DNA of 64,000 nt from Podarcis tiliguerta (Eukaryota). The notes below the pieces were generated by a model. That model was not told the DNA's origin. It was given only the letters and a program-made list of their open reading frames with translations, and searched no databases. Below, one piece after another: positions 2,839 to 62,132 of the stretch; within the stretch, counting starts at the first letter, position 1, and each line of letters opens with the position of its first letter. The stretch lies in assembly GCA_965153285.1 (NCBI GenBank), contig OZ229110.1. One strand, given 5' to 3'. The position numbers and the translations under genes were made by a program.

Positions 2839-3185
2839 AAAGGTAAAGGTAAAGGAACCTCTCACAATTAGGTCCAGTCGTGGCCGACTCTGGGGTTGCG
2901 GCGCTCATCTCACTTTATTGGCTGAGGGAGCCGGCGTACAGCTTCTGGGTCATGTGGCCAGCATGACTAAGCCGCTTCTGGCAAACCAGAGCAGTGCACG
3001 GAAACGCCGTTTACCTTCCCGCCGGAGCAGTACCTATTTATCTACTTGCACTTTGACGTGCTTTCGAACTGCTAGGTTGGCAGGAGCAGGGACCGAAAAA
3101 CGGAGCTCACCCCGTTGCGGGGATTCGAACCGCTGACCTTCTGATCGGCAAGTCCTAGGCTCTGTGGTTTAACCCACAGCGTCCC
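2839..3185 (-). mobile_element. Sauria SINE
   Basis: (aaaggt)n tail on the + strand and body gaccattaggtccagtcg...ggccagcatgactaagccgcttctgg...ggtttaacccacagc-type sequence shared with five other copies. Confidence 0.88.
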
Positions 3186-13976: not shown

Positions 13977-15510
13977 ATGTACAAGAACACACAGTGGAAA
14001 AATGACCCCTGTGCATTTCAGTGGCTATGTGTGTACACAGCCCTACTCACACCCTTACAGCCATAACAAGAAACCTCCTTTCCTCTCCTTGGGAGGCCCT
14101 TCATATTCCATAACCAAGCTAAACCCATGTGTTTTTTGGAAACTGTCCCCCTCTTTCTCCCCCCAAATTCCCCCTTGTGGGTTCCCACTGCTCACCAGAG
14201 TACTCTAACCACAAACTCATGGACACACTCAATCTCTCTGAAACATAATAATTGCTTTAAACCAAATCAGACCATTGGTTCATCTAGTACTACTGTCTAT
14301 ATACCATCTGTCAGTGACTTTCTGGGATTTCAGACCAGCCTTTCCCAGCCCCACCTGGGATTAAACCTTGGGGTTTAAACCTTGGACCAAATCATGTCCT
14401 CCATCTGTGAGTTATCCCCACCCCCTTTGTCATACCCACTTGGGGATATTTCTTCCCTTTCTTATGCCACCATTCGGGGAACCATTAGAATCCATGCTGA
14501 ATCTTTTATAGCTTCACACCGAAATGTCTTTCTCTCTGCCCAATTATTCCTGCTGTTCAAGTGTTCTAATAAGCAGAGAGAAGGAATCTAAGATTTCAGA
14601 ATAGGCAGCAGAAGAGTAGGATTATAATGATTGACCTACATTGGTATTCTTAGATTATTCAGAGCCAACTATATTAACACAACTGCTATCTTTACTATAA
14701 TGGGGCAACAGCAGAAACTGTATGATAAACCCAAAGCACACCCACCCTATTCTCTTATAAACGTGATGATTACTAGCTTGTGCAACAACGGGTTACACTA
14801 TTTTATACATGTCCTGTTTGTTCTCTTATTTATATTTTGATACATTTGTAGTCTGCTTTTCTATACAGAATATTCAAAGCAGCCTATAGACGACAACAAG
14901 ACAATATTAAACAAAAACAATGTAAATGATTGATCATGACATAAAGCATTAAAAATAACAAGCACATCCAGATCAAGCTGTCTATAAAGCCACTAGTTGG
15001 GTGCTGTATTTCAGCTGGATGCCTTTTGAAATAAATAGGTCATTTGCCCTGAGAAAGTCAAGCAATGATGGAGTCAGGTGGATCTCTCCCGGGAGGGCAT
15101 TCCATAAGCTAAGGCCCTGTTCCTCATTGTTGACTGCTATGTATCTGAAGACAATTGGATACAGACCAGATCTTAATGCCCAGGCTGGTTCATATGACCA
15201 AAGACAGTTCTTCAAGTATCCTGTAAGCTTCTCAAGATCCTGGCCAATTTAGGTCTAGTTCAGCCACATGGTTCCACGGCAAAGTCATTCGCCTGATCAG
15301 GGCCAGTTCCAACACACCCAGCACCATGCAAATGACCTAAAATGTGTGGTGCTGCATAAGTGCATATTACCATGGGGCCAAACCAGTCTACTGCCCACTG
15401 AAGAATGCAGGCATTATTCAGTAAGTATAGTAAACAAAGGGGACAAAAGCATGGCACTTCATTGGAATGTTTTAATCTGCAGAGCTTCACTCTCCAGGTT
15501 TATTACTTAC

Positions 15511-15658
15511 GGGTGAAATGATTTGAAGTGGATGGGTTGACACTATCACCACTGTCAGCGCTTTCACTGCTAGAAACGTCGTCATCCGATTCCCGCACCG
15601 AAGAGCAGGGCGAAGAGCCATCAACTTCTTCAAACTTCCTCTTTAAAATTCCACTCAT
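15511..15658 (-). CDS. CSRNP3: CSRNP3 first coding segment, 148 nt (exon 15511-15681 including 23 nt upstream of the ATG)
   Basis: MSGILKRKFEEVDGSSPCSSVRESDDDVSSSESADSGDSVNPSTSNHFT, matching the CSRNP3 N-terminus. Acceptor ctcttgcag ends at 15682, ATG is at 15658-15656, and donor gtaagt starts at 15510. The split codon C|CA gives Pro on joining the 714-973 exon. Confidence 0.96.
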
Positions 15659-16480
15659 AGCTGCAGCACTGTCACATGTACCTGCAAGAGGAACAGGTGC
15701 ATTGAAGCAAGGAAACATTTGACTGCAGACCAGGCAATCAAGGTCTTTAAAGTCATTCTGAGATGGGTTTTCTAATACTAGAAATGCTCAGGCTTCTCAT
15801 GAATAAGTTCCAGTGAGGGAGGGGGGCAGGGAGATAGAAGTGTCAACATTTGAGGCAAGAGAATTTCCTAGGTTCCCTCCTTTGTCTTATTAAGGAGTTT
15901 AAGAAAACCCTAACATCTAAATAATCACTGTAACAAGTAACACTGCTTTTCACAGAAAAACTGAAAATTTAAATCCATGTACCCAACTAATTGGTAATGC
16001 TAATAAAGTTGCCGCTGAATGTTCCAAAACTAGACCTCATACAAAACTGATCTGATGGGGGAAAGTCCTACAGTTTCCCTTTTTGTCTCACTTACATTTC
16101 AGGTTTCAATAAATCTTGTAAGAAAAGATGTAGAAGGCGCGGGGGGGGGGGGAGAGAGACTCCTGTTCACACAACAAGGTGTGCGGTGAAATTTTCCATA
16201 CAGGGAAAGTTAGGGACAGAGGCACCAGCTTGCAAGGGCGATTGGAGGGGGGGCCATGTCACAAGTGTGAGCATCACATCTCCCTCCCTAAGCTTGGTAG
16301 AAGCTTCCCAGGCTTCGGGAAGGAGGCACCAGGCTCTAATACTCCAATTTACCAGGAACATTTAGGGGACTAGCCTAGGCCCGAGTCCACTGACCACACA
16401 CAACTGAACACAGGAAGTACTGTTCCAAAAGGCAGGTGTGTTTCTGAGGCAGTGTTTGGCATGCACTAAACTACACTCCT

Positions 16481-54035: not shown

Positions 54036-54081
<46 letters not shown>
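54036..54081. repeat. (TTA)n microsatellite
   Basis: Directly visible. Confidence 0.95.
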
Positions 54082-54775
54082 TGTATACCACTCTTCATCT
54101 GTAGATCTCAGGGCTGTTCACAGCATAAAAATACAAGATAAAAACACAAAATACAAAAACAAAATACAAACAATATCAAAACAATAACCCCCTCCCTCTC
54201 CCTAGTAAGTGTACTTAAGACTGCAGCCTTAGTTGTTATTTAATTAAAAGCAACGTTCTGCAATTCAGCCGAGCAATATACTGTTTCTAAAAAAAGTAAA
54301 TAAAAACCTCACACACCCTTGAAGCAGAGTAATTTTATATCTATAGAAACCTGCATCACATGTTTTATCTATCAAAGGGGCCCTGCAGAATAGTTTTCTG
54401 GTGCAATCTCACATTTGATTTTTTCACTATTACACTTACAGTAACAATAGATATTTATGCCGCACTTGTTAGCTGTTCAGTTGTATAAGCAGATAAGTTC
54501 TGGCATGGCACTTTCCCATTGCACCTCTAACTTCCACCCAAGGCGTCACCCTAAAAGATATTTTTAGGAAACTGCTGGTTTCAAATCCACAGTGATAAAT
54601 AAGTCAATTGCCCCACTTCACATTCAGCCATCGTTGTGCAATGTTTTTAAACTCCCAGTCTTCAAACCTACTCTATGAAAACCTCCAGAGTTCATTTTCC
54701 CCTCTTGGCTCAGGCAACCCCCGCAATGTCTTGAGGAGGACGTTCTGATGCAACCTATTGCATCACATTGACATA

Positions 54776-55017
54776 CAGTGGTACCTCTCATTAAGAACTT
54801 AATTCGTTCCGGAGGTCCGTTCTTAACCTGAAACTGTTCTTAACCTGAGGTACCACTTTAGCTAATGGGGCCTCCCGCTGCTGCCGCACCACCGGAGCAT
54901 GATTTCTGTTTTCATCCTGAAGCAAAGTTTTTAACCCTAGGTACTATTTCTGGGTTAGCAGAGTCTGTAACCTGAAGCTTCTGTAACCTGAAGCGTCTGT
55001 AACCCGAGGTACCACTG
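54776..55017. mobile_element. Tc1/mariner (Tigger-like) MITE family B, copy 1
   Basis: cagtggtacctc...gaggtaccactg ends; left TA, right CA. Confidence 0.85.
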
Positions 55018-57763
55018 CACATCAGAATGTCTGTCTTTCTCTTTAGGGGAGGAAAGAATGAAGATGCAACAGCCTGGAAAATTGCCAGCCATTCTAGCTC
55101 CTGGTGTTCCAACTGAGTTGGCCTTTTCCTTTCCCCAGCCACCATCACAGAGCTACTCAGGGATCATGTTGCCCCGAGGGGAGGGGAGATGTAGTTTTGA
55201 AACAGGTTTCTTTTTTTCCCAACCCTTCTAGTTGTCTTCTCTGCTATATTATACCATTTTAACTGATACTTATTGATTTGTAGTTTCTTTGTAAACCAAT
55301 ATAATGATGTTTGCCTGAAAATCAGTATATAAATATCTTATCAGCTCACAATGTGTGAAAGCCTACCTGGCATTGAGGCATCACTACTTACAAGAACATT
55401 ACTACTACAGAACAACAAACCCCTGTGTTGCCAACTTAACACAACAAATAATTCAAGCAACACACAGACCAGTATACTAGATAGCACTGTAATTCTTATC
55501 GCATAATATACATTATTTGGTACAACAAAAACAAAATGTGTGCACTTGTAAATTCTCTAATATATTTGAAATCAGTTGAACACACGTCTGTCAATCTTTG
55601 AAAGTCCGTAGAAGTATGATAAGTTTATGGTTGAAACAAAGTAATAGATGCTATCCTGTGGGCTAAGCGGTAAAACCTTTTTTGGGCGTTCATGGTGCCG
55701 AAGTAGTAGGTGAATAACAACGGACAGTGATCCCGGATAATCTGACTGTTTCGCTGGAATCTTCTTCAGCACAACCCATAGATTAGAAAAATGCACAAGG
55801 AGCAGTGGTCATGAGGATATTACAAGAACATAACTGAAAACTATGTGAAAGAATGGCAATCCACAATAAAAAAGTAACCCAATGTATGGCAGAAGGTAAA
55901 ACAATGAAGGATATATAGGCAGACGTGTAGGAATTTGTGAAACACATAAAGCAATGTTGTCCTTTACATGCAATATAATTTTGTTAGCTTGGGTAGAGCA
56001 GCAAATTGCAAGCCACTCCCAAGTAATGGTCCATACATAGCATCAAAGGCTGATCAAGTTAATTCTGGCGCCAGAGGCAAAATAAAACCCACTGTCATTT
56101 TCTCTGTGGATAAAAATATAATAAAGAACCAACTATTTTCATGATACCAAAAATTGGCTGGTTGGCCAGTTAGAACAGGAGGCTGGCATAAATGGGCCTA
56201 TGGTCTAATCCAGCAGCAATCTTTTTCTTATGTTAGCTGTCTGAGGCAGCTGCCTCGCAGTGACACTACTGCACTACAAATTTGTTTAAATGTTTCGGAA
56301 CACGCTGTGACATTTCCTTTAGATTTGTAATTTTAAAAAATTAAAAGTTGTGTGAAGACATTCTCCTTCTCACAATGGCTGTGAAACGGTCATAAAATAT
56401 CTATGTGAAGTTCACAATCTCTTACAATTTATTCAATATTCTTAATTATTCAATGCATTTCCAAGTATATGGGTTAATTTTTGAATATGTTTTTGATGAT
56501 GCTTGGGAGCCAACAATTATATTTATTTCCGATGGATCTGGTAAAGCAGTAGTGCCAAGATATCTATGAATAAATCGGTTTCTACCTGCCCATCTCTTGC
56601 TGAATCTCACCTGGTTCCTGAGAAGCACAGTGATCTCAGAATTCTCCGAATTCATTGGGTGGCAGGCCTAGGCCTTCCTGAGAGGCATCATTAAAGCTGA
56701 ACTCTCATCTTCTGTATGTTGTTAGGCTTTATTGAATTCCAGTGCTTTTTCTTGCTGTTCTTAGTCATTCGCATTGATGGTTTTCTTGTGTATTTTTGTG
56801 AAATTTGTGTTTTTCACTTGCCATACATCGTATATGTTAAACAGTATATAAATGGACTTGGATAAATACACATACACAAAAACATATACTCAGCAAACAC
56901 TCACCTGTTTTATCTACTACCACTACACCTTGTCAACACTTCCCAGTCGCCTCTTTAATCTTTGTCAGCCTCTCCTTATTCCTGCACCTTATTCCTGCTT
57001 TCCTTTCATTATTGTTAGTAGTAGTAGTAGCAGCAGCAACTAACAGCAGTAGCTGAATGCCAGTTAATGATGTTGCTGCTGTAACAAGGCTTCCCATATT
57101 TTTTTAATGTTTTTTTTTCTGTGGAGCCTAGAAAATTAGTGGATGTGGTTTGCTGTCTGCCATCAACAGGAATTCATATTTATACAGCGTTCTTGCAATT
57201 ATAGTACTGATTAATGATAAGTGCCCTGCTGTCTGCAATCTATTCCTTTGAGGGAACCACACTTTATGTTCCAAAAAATGTTTTATACCTCTTAGTGATG
57301 CATTATTATTCTTTGCAGATCAAAGATCATGGTTGTCATGGAAACTGCAAAAACTGGAAAGCCAGTCGTGACATAGCAATGGCATAATGGGGAAGATCTG
57401 CTGGGAAATCACTCACTAGCCTGGGGTTTTGTGTTGGAAATGCTTGGGTGAATTTAAGTGGAAAGCCAAGTCGTTTCTGAGATCTAAAAGCATTGTGGTA
57501 TTAAACGCAAAATATCAGTCGCTGTTACAATCAGCATGCTTGACTGTGTGCAGTGCAGCAAAAAAACATGTTCCTAATTTTTTCTTCCTCCAAATGGGAT
57601 GCAGGAATACTACAGTTTTATTAATCCTATTTTCTACAATCCCACAGCAAGCTTTTGTGGATATATAGCATGCCACACGCCTAACCAAAGGCTCAGTTCC
57701 TCGAATTTCAGGCTTTAAAATTTATCTAACTCATTTGCAGAATTAACAACAACGATCCAAATA

Positions 57764-57989
57764 CAGTGGTACCTCGGGTTAAGAACTTAATTCGTTCTGG
57801 AGGTCTGTTCTTAACCTGAAACTGTTCTTAACCTGAGGTACCACTTTAGCTAATGGGGCCTCCTGCTGCCATTGCGCTGCCACCATGCAATTTCTGTTCT
57901 CATCCTGAAGCAAAGTTCTTAACCCGAGGTACTATTTCTGGGTTAGCAGAGTCTGTAACCTGAAGCGTCTGTAACCCGAGGTACCACTG
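57764..57989. mobile_element. Tc1/mariner (Tigger-like) MITE family B, copy 2
   Basis: TIR cagtggtacctcgggtta; TA TSD. Confidence 0.88.
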
Positions 57990-58672
57990 TATCAGAATGA
58001 AAGCTGAATAGAAATAAGCAGATGGGCCAATGACAGAATGAATACTTGACTTCATGGTGATTGGTGTGGAACACATTGCAACATGTTAATTTCCAGTGTT
58101 AGAAAATGTCGGGGCGTGGTGTGTGTGTGGGGGGGGTGTTTGTGTGTGTAAGTAAGAGTCTTGATATCTGCAAGTTCCATCTTTCCATGCCAGAAGCAGA
58201 GAACCCTTGGCCCTCCAAATGTTGGTAGACAACAACTCCCATTAACTCTGACAGTTGGCCATGCAGGCTGAGGCTGATGGGAGCTGAAGTCCCAACACCA
58301 TCTGGAAGCCCATAGACACACACACCCCATTCCGGTTCCAGAACTTTCTTTTGGAACATTTGGACAGCCTGACCATGAATGCGGTTGCACCGGTACTTAT
58401 GCAGTACTTATTTTACCTTTTTGGGGAAAGTATAAATCTTTCATCTAAGTGAAATTTCTGAAGCATAGAGTTAAAACAATTAGGGTTACAGGCATCCTGA
58501 GATACGCATCCACTAGCTGGTGTGTGTGATACCTGAGGTACCATAAGAGACACAGACATTTCCCCTTACTTTTAATTTTGGGAAGTTTCTGTTAATAACT
58601 TTTAAATCCGTACTGTAAGTCTATGGTGGGTTGTCTGTCCTATCATGCTGAATTATGTAAACAATTAAGTAG

Positions 58673-58674
<2 letters not shown>

Positions 58675-58708
<34 letters not shown>
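58675..58708. repeat. (GT)n microsatellite
   Basis: Directly visible; it reads (CA)n on the transcript strand, about 80 nt downstream of the duplicate exon's donor. Confidence 0.95.
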
Positions 58709-58710
<2 letters not shown>

Positions 58711-58788
58711 TCCAAAGTGAAAACATTGCCCAAAAAATTTACTTTAAAAAAGAACATGGATCCACCTTGCCTGGCATCTGGTACTTAC

Positions 58789-58956
58789 GAATAAAATGAT
58801 TTGAAGTGGACAGATTGACACTATCAGCATCGTCAGCGCTTTTGCCGCTAGAAACTTCATCATCCGATTCCCACACAGAGAAGATTGAGGAGCCGCCAAC
58901 TTCTTCAAACTTCCTCATTAAAATTCCACTCATAGCTTCAGCATTGTCACATGTAC
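58789..58956 (-). other. CSRNP3: Diverged duplicate of the CSRNP3 ATG exon (alternative exon or pseudo-exon); coding part 58789-58933
   Basis: MSGILMRKFEEVGGSSIFSVWESDDEVSSGKSADDADSVNLSTSNHFI. By manual alignment to 15511-15658 there are 23 substitutions in 145 nt plus one codon deletion. Acceptor ctctgacag, ATG, 23-nt leader and donor gtaagt are all retained. Homology continues about 90 nt into the upstream intron. Confidence 0.9.
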
Positions 58957-60540
58957 CTGTCAGAGGAACAGGAGAAATGAAGCATGAAAACATTTGACCG
59001 CTGACCATGCTATCAAAATCTCCAAAGTCATTGCTGGAGGGTTTTTTGTTTTTTTTATCAATACACTTGGCTTCTGTTTCTGCCTGGAGACTGGTAAAAG
59101 TACCAAACTGGAATTAAAAAACCAAACATGTACGTGTTTTGTTACAGACACATACTTCCTCAAATAATTGGGCAGGAACAATCAGTTCTGCAGCTTGGCT
59201 CAGGCACTACAATAGTCAGCAGTGGACTTGGGGTGCCCCTGCATGACGGAGGGAATCTTACATATAATATAGATCAACAGCTTTTGGGGTGTGCTGGTTT
59301 TTACTTTTGGAAGTATGGCAACCCTAACATAAAATATGGAAATACCTAATTGTGAAAAGAGGCCCAGTCTGAGCGATCTTCCAGCTCCTTTTCGGAAGAG
59401 AAAGCATTGCATAGCATGGGTCAGGCATCTCTTTCATCTGGCATCCTTGTGGAATGGCTACCCCACATCAGGACATGGTTTGCACAGTGGAGGGAAGAAA
59501 ACTATGCCTGCTCTTCTACCACGTGATGGTTCTTACCACCCAAGTAACTACACAATCCTATTGCAGCCAAAACAGCGAATGATGAACAGTCTTTCCAACA
59601 CTGAAGAGGCTGGTGTGCTCACCTGTTTGCCTATATAAGTATGCAGCATTTTTATTCAGATGTTAATTCCTACTGCATGCATTCAATGGGATTTGTTTCC
59701 TAATAAGTCACATATTTATGATTGCGGCCAAATGTCTGAATGGGTCCAACGTTAATATGTAGTATTTGGTTACACAGGAAAGGCTGTTTTATTCATAGTG
59801 CCCTCAGGTTCCCCTCACCCACTGATACTAGGCTTGAAAACTTTATACCATATACTTCCCTCTCCAGCTGTAACCCCCTCCCCCAAAAATGTTCCTCTCC
59901 ACTATGCAAAATACTATTTGTTGGCTTAGAAGGAAATATGTACATGGGATGGTAGGGCAATCCCAGAGCCATCCCAGCTCAAGGACATAGCTCTCCCACC
60001 TTTCTCAGACTCGGAGGACTTTATTTGGTTGGTGAACATAAACACACTTAAAGCTTACACATCTCCCCAATGCAATATTCCCCTGTAGACCTAGCCTACT
60101 CCTTACGAGGCGGCAATGAGCTGGAAGAATCCATAGGCAACAGAAGGGACTGTACCAGTTCAGGCTGCAAGTGGAAGCACCACAATTTGCTCCCCAACTT
60201 TAAAAATGGATAAAAGTAGTAGGATGCAGGGGCATAGCATGAAGGGTCAGAGGGGAGCCATGGCCCCAGGCTTACAACTTTTGAGGGGTGCAAACCAGGC
60301 ACCCCAGCACGGTGCTCCTCTCCGCCTGCCAAGGGCTGCGCTTGCTGGTTGGGCTCCCCTTGCACGGGCAGGCAGCTGCTCAGCTCAGCCCAACTTTTCT
60401 CCGGTGGGATCGCTCAGGAGGCGTTCAACAGTTCATCTCTAGCCATCAAAATGTTTTTCTTTTAACCCTGCAGAAATCTGGCACGGACTGTGCCATCTAG
60501 CCTTCATTTGATCGCTATGTTGTTAGAATATTTGACTTGT

Positions 60541-61230
60541 AAAGGTAAAGGTAAAGGCAGTGGCGTAGCGTGGGTTGTCAGCACCCGGGGCAAGGCAAGT
60601 AATTTGCGCCCCCTAACCCGGGGCAAGGCAAGTAATTTGCGCCCCCACTGCACTGTCCCTCCCCCAGATAGTCCCTCGCTCTCTCTCCACACCGCACCGC
60701 ACGCCTGGCACCCTCCCCTCCACACTGGGTGGCGACCCGGCGGCTCGGATCGGATTTGCACAGCCAGCACTGCAGTGAGAGAGAGTGAGTGAGCCAGGGA
60801 GGGGCAGAGAGCTGCGAGTGCGAGCACGCCCCCCCCAGATGTTGCGCCCGGTGCGGCCGGCACCCCCTGCACCCCCCACGCTACGCCACTGGGTAAAGGG
60901 GACTCCTGACCATTAGGTACAGTCGTGGCCGACTCTGGGGTTGTGGCGCTCATCTCGCTCTATAGGCCGAGGGAGCTGGCATACAGCTTCCAGGTCATGT
61001 GGCCATCATGACTAAGCCGCTTCTGGCAATCCAGAGCAGCACACGGAAACACTGTTTACCTTCCCGCCAGATTTATCTACTTGCACTTTGACGTGCTTTC
61101 GAACTGCTAGGTTGGCAGGAGCAGGGACCGAGCAGTGGGAGCTCACCCTGTCGCGGGGATTCAAACCGCCGACCTTCTGATCGGCAAGTCCTAGGCTCTG
61201 TGGTTTAACCCACAGCACCACCCGCGTCCC
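60541..61230 (-). mobile_element. Sauria SINE interrupted in its tail by a hAT MITE
   Basis: Tail at 60541-60557 and body at 60892-61230. The TSD ttgacttgt is at 60532-60540 and 61233-61241. Confidence 0.88.
60558..60891. mobile_element. Non-autonomous hAT-type DNA transposon (MITE), GC/CpG-rich
   Basis: Perfect 17-bp TIR cagtggcgtagcgtggg and perfect 8-bp TSD ggtaaagg (60550-60557, 60892-60899). Confidence 0.9.
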
Positions 61231-61890
61231 AATTGACTTGTCCCAATTTGACGTGTAGTCTGTTATATTAAGCAACTATATAGCAAGCTAACATAATTCA
61301 AATCTCTCACCAAACCCCCCGACATTCCCAAGTGACAGTTTATATGGCATAATCTTCCAAGGCTGCCGTCCTCAACTGCCTTTCTAGGGAATAAAGTCTC
61401 CTGAACACAGTAAACATGCACAAGATTCCACAGTGAAAAAGAGAGGGATGACAAGTAGCCTGGAGTGCAAATGCCTAATGGGGTTATCTTTGTTTTGTGG
61501 CTTCCTGATTTCTATTTTGCACATGTACTAGCAGAAATCCAGGCCTCATTTATCTTTGGGGAGAGAGCCCAGAGTGGAAGCAGGAAATTCTCTTCTAGGA
61601 AAGTTATTTTACAATAACTGGGGGGGGGGGCTCTAAAGCAATTGTTATGTTATGTGTTCACACTGACTACATGAGAGTGGGGAATTATGCAGCCTTCTGG
61701 ACTATACAGCCACTCTTGAATCGCTCTGCCTCACACCAACTTCTGACTTCTATGTGGCTAGAATGTAGCCTTACTGTAGAATATAAGAGTTGCATCTATT
61801 GACCCACCTACCATGGGATGCCTCTGAAAGGTCATCTGTGAGAGAAATGCAGCCCTCTGGTTGAAACAGGTTCCCCATCCCTTGACTTTA

Positions 61891-62132
61891 CAGTGGTACC
61901 TCAGGTTAAGTACTTAATTCGTTCCAGAGGTCTGTTCTTAACCTGAAACTGTTCTTAACCTGAAGCACCACTTTAGCTAATGGGGCCTCCTGCTGCCACC
62001 GCACCACCACCGTGCAATTTCTGTTCTCATCCTGAAGCAAAGTTCTTAACCTGAGGTACTATTTCTGGGTTAGCGGAGTCTGTAACCTGAAGCGTCTGTA
62101 ACCTGAAGCGTATGTAACCCGAGGTACCACTG
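61891..62132. mobile_element. Tc1/mariner (Tigger-like) MITE family B, copy 3
   Basis: Same TIR and body; TA TSD. Confidence 0.88.

Follow-up and report, generated by a model that had tools for sequence, protein, structure and literature searches.

A lineage-restricted and probably exonised duplicate of the CSRNP3 start-codon exon in a lizard genome

Results

Exons of CSRNP3 in the analyzed window

The window, i.e., the whole stretch of 64,000 nucleotides of Podarcis tiliguerta DNA that was analyzed, contains exons of the CSRNP3 gene, which is encoded on the minus strand; all exon coordinates are given on this (sense) strand and are collected in Table 1. The canonical first coding exon, termed exon A, encodes the conserved N-terminal tail MSGILKRKF... 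that identifies the gene as CSRNP3, and its peptide is identical to those of Alligator (P0207) and Bos taurus (P0214) in 49 of 50 positions and to that of the snake Pseudonaja (P0210) in 47 of 50. The peptide encoded by exon 2 is 100% identical to the Alligator CSRNP3 fragment P0207 and matched the Pfam family CSRNP_N (PF16019) in a profile search with an E-value of 2.1e-29 and 103.5 bits (cut-off 27). Since the CSRNP_N domain begins within exon 2, the start-codon exon, which is the duplicated one at this locus, encodes a tail N-terminal to the domain. The conclusions drawn from peptide comparisons are based on those sequences of alligator, snake, cow, and fish that carry a species name; the mammal-type fragments P0215 and P0212 were included in one local alignment. 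In the literature collection searched, no paper linked CSRNP3 to lizards.

Table 1. Features of the CSRNP3 locus and of the duplicated exon
Feature	Position	Strand	Basis or properties
Exon 2, phase 1 acceptor, 86 full codons	714-973	minus	Contains the start of CSRNP_N; single copy within the window
Exon A, canonical CSRNP3 start-codon exon, 171 nt	15511-15681	minus	Peptide comparison; leader of 23 nt, open in the coding frame
Source-side upstream intron, homologous to 58957-59045	15682-15771	minus	Alignment
Candidate downstream half of the TACCAGnnnCCAGGCA repeat	58767-58783	minus	Begins exactly at the end of the homology to the exon A locus
Donor GTAAGTA, final 7 nt of the copied segment	58782-58788	minus	Same as donor of exon A; homology stops here
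Exon B, duplicate start-codon exon, 168 nt	58789-58956	minus	Open frame, 84% coding identity to exon A
Layout of exon B: 23-nt leader, ATG, 48 codons + 1 nt, end in phase 1	ATG 58933-58931	minus	
Upstream starts in the leader of exon B	58930-58952	minus	Frame translations
Copy of the upstream intron, including its polypyrimidine tract and AG acceptor (58958-58957)	58957-59045	minus	73 of 88 aligned nt identical to 15682-15771
Candidate upstream half of a 16-nt target-site-like direct repeat, TACCAGnnnCCAGGCA	59080-59096	minus	13 of 16 positions identical to 58783-58767

Exon B is a duplicate of the start-codon exon

Exon B is located 43,108 nt upstream of exon A, in the same gene and on the same strand, and the two exons are adjacent in exon order. 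BLASTN and Smith-Waterman alignments matched 15504-15771 (A) with 58782-59045 (B) over 269 columns with 82.9% identity, 40 mismatches, and four small gaps (E = 3e-74 for the pair and 2.65e-71 when the whole window was compared with itself), and in this self-comparison the pair was the sole non-transposon match touching either place. The copied block comprises about 90 nt of upstream intron, the whole exon, and 7 nt of downstream intron. Within the coding part, 23 substitutions in 144 aligned nt (nine synonymous and 14 non-synonymous steps) and one 3-nt deletion separate the two copies, and exon B contains no stop codon; the leaders differ by two mismatches in 23 nt and the upstream intron segments by 15 mismatches, with 73 matches, over 88 aligned nt. 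A reading of the sequence alone (the sequence-only reading) had described a same-strand copy with about 84% coding identity, a single clean codon deletion, no stop, and an intact acceptor, leader, ATG, and donor, and alignment and translation bore out all of these points. The 36 of 48 identical residues that it had counted agree with the 37 identical columns in our 50-column peptide alignment.

A processed retrocopy, which that reading had already discounted, is ruled out by the copied intron on both sides of the exon (88 aligned nt upstream and 7 nt downstream), the absence of exon 2 from the copy, and the lack of a 3′ A-run. The duplicate is an isolated exon of about 265 nt and not part of a whole paralogue, as had also been proposed: local tblastn and sensitive blastn searches revealed neither a second copy of exon 2 nor a third copy of the start-codon exon in the window, and the homology does not extend beyond 59045, as a further 35 nt upstream scored no better than shuffled sequences (1485 of 2000).

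The presence of the duplicate in sequencing runs was assessed by a word survey of the segment 58740-59060, for which 35 words out of 291 were sampled. A genome-sized group of six runs with 1300-1700 Mb of contigs, derived from two studies of the organisms designated F and B, contained a fraction of 0.89-1.00 of the sampled words, the run with the highest share possibly being the source sample of the window's assembly. Because genome runs contain these words, the sequence of exon B is no invention of the assembly. Exon B thus is a genuine duplicate of the CSRNP3 start-codon exon and is restricted to a lineage; none of the protein models compared, from alligator, snake, cow, and fish, contains it.

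With respect to its origin, we propose that a piece of about 265 bp, composed of the last 90 nt or so of an intron, the entire start-codon exon, and 7 nt of the next CSRNP3 intron, was copied, at the DNA level and in a lizard lineage, to a site 43 kb away in an upstream intron of the same gene. The candidate target-site-like direct repeat TACCAGnnnCCAGGCA flanking the copied block is no more than suggestive; a match of at least 12 of 16 positions between the flanks also occurred in 31 of 500 shuffles (6%). Such a repeat would hint at a staggered break that was patched with sequence from 43 kb downstream.

Splice and start signals of exon B

The signals required for exon recognition are complete in exon B. 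Its acceptor, ...cctgttcctctgacAG/GT (the slash marks the splice site), has pyrimidines in 16 of the 20 positions before the AG compared to 14 of 20 in exon A, and the donor (TTC/GTAAGT) as well as the context of the ATG are the same as in exon A. With its own polypyrimidine tract, AG, ATG, and perfect GTAAGT donor carried along in the copy, exon B would be recognised by the spliceosome.

Both leaders contain the start-stop sequence ATGTGA (58952-58947 in exon B), the frame of which translates to YM followed by a stop in both exons. The leaders at 15659-15681 and 58934-58956 are nearly identical, and the leader is also read in frame in the alligator model P0207 (..GTCDSVAAM..). The 5′ leader therefore seems to be conserved across sauropsids, judging from these sequences, and with its ATGTGA may be a translational control element. 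Exon B alone has an additional ATG at 58944-58942, which opens a four-codon frame whose TGA overlaps the main ATG (frame translation VHVTMLKL followed by a stop).

How much weight the intactness of exon B can bear was estimated by random-substitution simulations with 18-22 changes. The AG, the GT, the ATG, and the frame all survived in 24-32% of the trials and in 14-20% if the whole GTAAGT was required; when the chance of about one third that a single indel stays in frame was included, the probability of survival by chance dropped to about 0.1. The intactness is mild evidence at best, and exon B had been chosen in the sequence-only reading for this very property.

Surroundings of exon B

No promoter is visible near exon B, and therefore it is expected to be entered by splicing from an exon located upstream of the window. 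A CpG-rich stretch (60400-61200) lies 1.5-2.3 kb upstream of exon B, but was rejected as a promoter island since a SINE copy (60892-61231) is contained in it and repetitive-looking sequence follows immediately downstream. tRNA-like SINE copies are present at this position (up to five overlapping self-matches) and at 2880-3180; they are CpG-rich and mimic CpG islands in a simple scan. Other self-matching repeats are located at 54773-55029, 57761-57999, and 61889-62132. The segment 53636-54004 is a short element of the non-autonomous type, whose 24-nt terminal inverted repeats are 96% complementary. Further copies of the repeat arm and a series of GCTAAT-like units occur inside it, and its CpG density is the highest in the window; a long (AAT)n microsatellite (54040-54085) adjoins it. 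Downstream of the exon B donor, at a distance of about 55 nt, lies a (CA)n microsatellite (58690-58735). Close to donors, such repeats can enhance splicing. An Rfam search of the segment 1-58890 found nothing, and a search for a docking or selector RNA structure common to the two copied intron segments gave no outlier.

Reading frame and possible splice routes

Exons B (168 nt) and A (171 nt) both have lengths that are multiples of three and both end in phase 1, and either of them preserves the frame on joining exon 2. From the ATG of exon B to the end of the exon there are 145 nt, which together with the 23-nt leader of exon A add up to 168 nt, so that the ATGs of B and A are in frame; the codon at the B-A junction is CGT, and the leader of exon A contains no stop in that frame. 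By arithmetic only, the routes from B to exon 2 and from B via A to exon 2 are therefore equally in frame. The alternative N-terminus that the sequence-only reading had derived from direct splicing of B to exon 2 does keep the frame; it is, however, not the sole in-frame outcome, since the route via exon A fits equally.

Ordinary exon definition predicts the route via exon A, a strong constitutive internal exon. Transcripts would start upstream of the window, splice into 58956, and then be joined from 58789 to exon A at 15681. The protein product would carry a 56-residue N-terminal extension, i.e., a degenerate tandem repeat of the N-terminal module ahead of the normal N-terminus and not a substitution of it. 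Less likely, 58789 would be spliced straight to exon 2 at 973, by which the N-terminus would be replaced.

Presence of exon B in RNA-like sequencing runs

Besides the genome-sized runs, the word survey revealed a transcriptome-sized group of 14 runs with 39-110 Mb of contigs, which originated from five organisms and six studies and contained a fraction of 0.34-0.46 of the sampled words. The RNA status of these runs is a guess, being given as 'RNA? (a guess)', and none of them is on record as RNA. The contig sizes follow from reading the 'million letters' of the contig rows as contig totals, because the runs of 1.3-1.7 Gb could otherwise not contain the words of a whole lizard genome. Nine of the 14 runs had a share of 0.46, three of 0.43, and two of 0.34, corresponding to 16, 15, and 12 of the 35 words. 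The nine runs with 16 words came from five studies, six of them from organism B, and all contained the same 16 words. Words located wholly inside exon B account for 138 of the 291 words (0.47), equivalent to 16.6 of 35, and the maximum observed was 16; that the 14 runs contain the exon only is deduced from this share, as the positions of the words were not given. Eight of the 14 runs were from organism B and had at most 16 of 35 words each, compared to 31 of 35 in the genome of organism B. Four raw RNA runs of organism B were also listed, but are not part of the word index.

Transcripts of exon A cannot be the source of these words, because the alignment of exons A and B shows no 31-mer in common. 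A sharp word limit that is common to several studies and equals the length of the exon fits spliced RNA, whereas capture, genome skimming, reduced-representation libraries, or pre-mRNA would be expected to yield other limits or ragged ones. The word share of the RNA-like runs makes it likely, in our view, that exon B is present in processed RNA, and at least some CSRNP3 transcripts of this lizard and its close relatives would then include the exon.

For searches with the two start-codon exons, the pieces 58790-58894 (B) and 15512-15619 (A) were used. In the protein collections, a B-type N-terminus was not found among predicted proteins of 28-89 aa with B-specific words (58742-58894, including intron read-through), nor was a B-type protein present among the cluster representatives listed, of 47-150 and 104-331 aa, with words via exon 2. 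The searches with exon 2 words and the search of representatives returned only genomic read-through open reading frames and partial proteins of the A-type. This absence says little, since the full-length protein of about 590 aa lies outside these length ranges and isoforms with 98% identity to the canonical protein would be hidden in clusters formed at 90%.

Divergence of the two copies

The peptides encoded by exons A and B differ by 12 substitutions and one deleted codon, and 11 of the substitutions as well as the deletion are derived in B. The derived changes strike residues that are invariant in the family from fish to mammals. They include K6M in the motif LKRKF (LKR[K/R]F throughout the fish and paralogue sequences compared), D13G, the loss of the Pro and Cys of SSPCSS, as well as R>W, S>G, E>K, S>D, G>A, P>L in an invariant NP, and T>I. 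The replacement of KRK by MRK and the loss of Pro and Cys from the N-terminal tail, both reported in the sequence-only reading, were thus recovered.

Residue 27 (15578-15580 in exon A) is Asp in exon A of this lizard and of Pseudonaja and Glu in alligator, cow, and exon B, and Asp may be a change shared by squamates. The duplication might then predate the change at residue 27 and perhaps even the lizard-snake split, although this is weak evidence and a single reversal would fit the sequences equally well.

According to the method of Nei and Gojobori, nine synonymous changes at 31 sites and 14 non-synonymous changes at 116 sites separate A and B. The resulting pairwise dN/dS of 0.36 includes the strongly constrained branch of A; if the synonymous changes are divided evenly between the branches, arithmetic from these counts gives a value of about 0.8 for B itself. 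The synonymous fraction (9/23) is not significantly above the 0.25-0.33 expected from random mutation of this exon, depending on transition and CpG bias (p = 0.1-0.4), and the divergence of the exon (25 of 168) is about that of the flanking intron (15 of 88; K = 0.19). Purifying selection with conservative substitutions on both copies was not detected for B, a result of low power with only 23 changes. Within this low power, there is no sign that the peptide of B is maintained by selection, and the pattern of synonymous and non-synonymous changes appears consistent with neutral drift. Neutral rates are of the order of 1e-9 per site per year. A K of 0.19 would on this basis roughly correspond to 100 million years if both intron copies drift and to more if the intron on the side of A is constrained.

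Discussion

The results are in our opinion best accounted for, with somewhat more confidence than doubt, by a lineage-restricted duplicate that has probably been exonised: exon B would be included in RNA, with its peptide under no detectable selection. We regard it as a young alternative exon that is still on trial, or else as a regulatory 5′ exon that has gained an additional upstream start. The view that it is an established second protein form is not supported.

Less probable, but the most serious alternative, is that exon B is a silent pseudo-exon, i.e., a neutral relic in intron 1 that is still open but unspliced or spliced at noise level, in which case the 14 smaller runs would represent DNA libraries from capture or reduced representation, or unspliced RNA. 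The coding pattern fits neutrality, residues that are invariant in the family have been lost in B, and the AG, GT, ATG, and frame would survive by chance with a probability of 0.24-0.32, or of about 0.1 including the in-frame indel. Moreover, no run containing the words is recorded as RNA, and no B-type protein was found in the protein sets searched. The word survey is nevertheless hard to reconcile with a silent exon: nine runs from five studies stopped at the same 16 of 35 words, none had more, and the genome of organism B had 31; neither capture nor skimming nor pre-mRNA would be expected to produce such sharp common limits at the length of the exon. In addition, the contig totals of these runs (39-110 Mb, compared to 1300-1700 Mb for the genome runs) look transcriptomic.

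That exon B is regularly used as a lineage-restricted start-codon exon providing a second N-terminus, either by replacement or as the tandem repeat formed via exon A and exon 2, we regard as rather unlikely. Still more doubtful is a functional alternative N-terminus in the strict sense, in which B replaces A, by mutual exclusion or from its own promoter, and yields an isoform whose basic patch is altered and which has fewer phosphorylatable serines, selection maintaining it within a squamate clade. It would explain why about 15% divergence has left all signals and the frame unharmed, with only one indel, which is in frame, and why RNA-like runs of five organisms contain the whole exon with at most one word lost; the ancestral Glu27 retained in B is a hint of an old origin and hence of long survival. 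On the other hand, synonymous changes are not in excess, and K6M, the loss of Pro and Cys, R>W, P>L, and T>I are radical changes at positions fixed from fish to mammals. In addition, B acquired an upstream ATG frame that overlaps its own start, no complementary docking sequence is conspicuous for the two intron copies, and no mechanism is visible by which the strong constitutive exon A would be skipped. An artefact of assembly or mapping, in which the second copy is an allelic or mis-joined exon A, is very improbable: nothing specific speaks for it except that the best genome run may be the sample behind the window's assembly, whereas 17% divergence and a codon deletion far exceed allelic variation, the flanks outside the 269 columns are unrelated, and the words found in the six genome-sized runs include those spanning the exon-flank junctions.

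The probably exonised duplicate can be compared with several known systems. Like the tandem duplicated and mutually exclusive homologous exons of vertebrates (PMC9741552, PMC8373072), exons A and B are two homologous neighbours on the same strand of one gene with equal lengths modulo 3 and matching phases, so that a swap would alter the homologous stretch only. Structurally, exon B is a tandem or intragenic exon duplication of the type from which homologous alternative exons arise. More than 90% of the human tandem exon substitution events are matched by orthologues in bony fish; these events are conservative in their substitutions and well expressed (PMC9741552). Exon B differs from these events in being absent from the amniote and fish models compared, in being 83% identical to its source with radical derived changes and no detectable constraint, and in duplicating a start-codon exon at a distance of 43 kb.

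Unannotated tandem exon duplicates in introns are known from human, fly, and worm, where their use was judged by RNA-seq coverage and split reads (PMC9013439). Exon B is likewise intronic and homologous to a neighbouring exon. A looser parallel is the hydra gene of Drosophila, in which a recent duplication of the first exon led to alternative 5′ exons in a restricted lineage; the copies in hydra are in tandem and close to each other, many are flanked by transposons, and several act as transcription start sites (PMC1904467), whereas exon B is equipped with an acceptor and lacks promoter-like sequence in its vicinity. With pseudo-exons and exon relics, exon B shares that it is an isolated intronic copy evolving at about the neutral rate, but it differs from them in having no disabling change and in its apparent presence in RNA-like runs.

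If exon B provides a second N-terminus, it would represent a recent tandem exon duplication at an early point on the way to an alternative coding exon. Cases at such an early stage are rare, since orthologues in bony fish exist for more than 90% of the comparable human events (PMC9741552). If exon B is not used, it would be an ordinary relic. In any case, a strongly conserved start exon (49 of 50 residues identical between the lizard and alligator or cow) has a young copy whose signals are complete while its code is drifting. Duplication of an exon followed by alternative use of the copies is a textbook origin of new protein isoforms. Should the use of exon B be confirmed, it would become a test case for whether a fresh exon is first tolerated as noise, serves as a 5′ regulatory exon, or acts as a coding variant, and one could then ask what an altered or doubled N-terminal tail does to a CSRNP protein.
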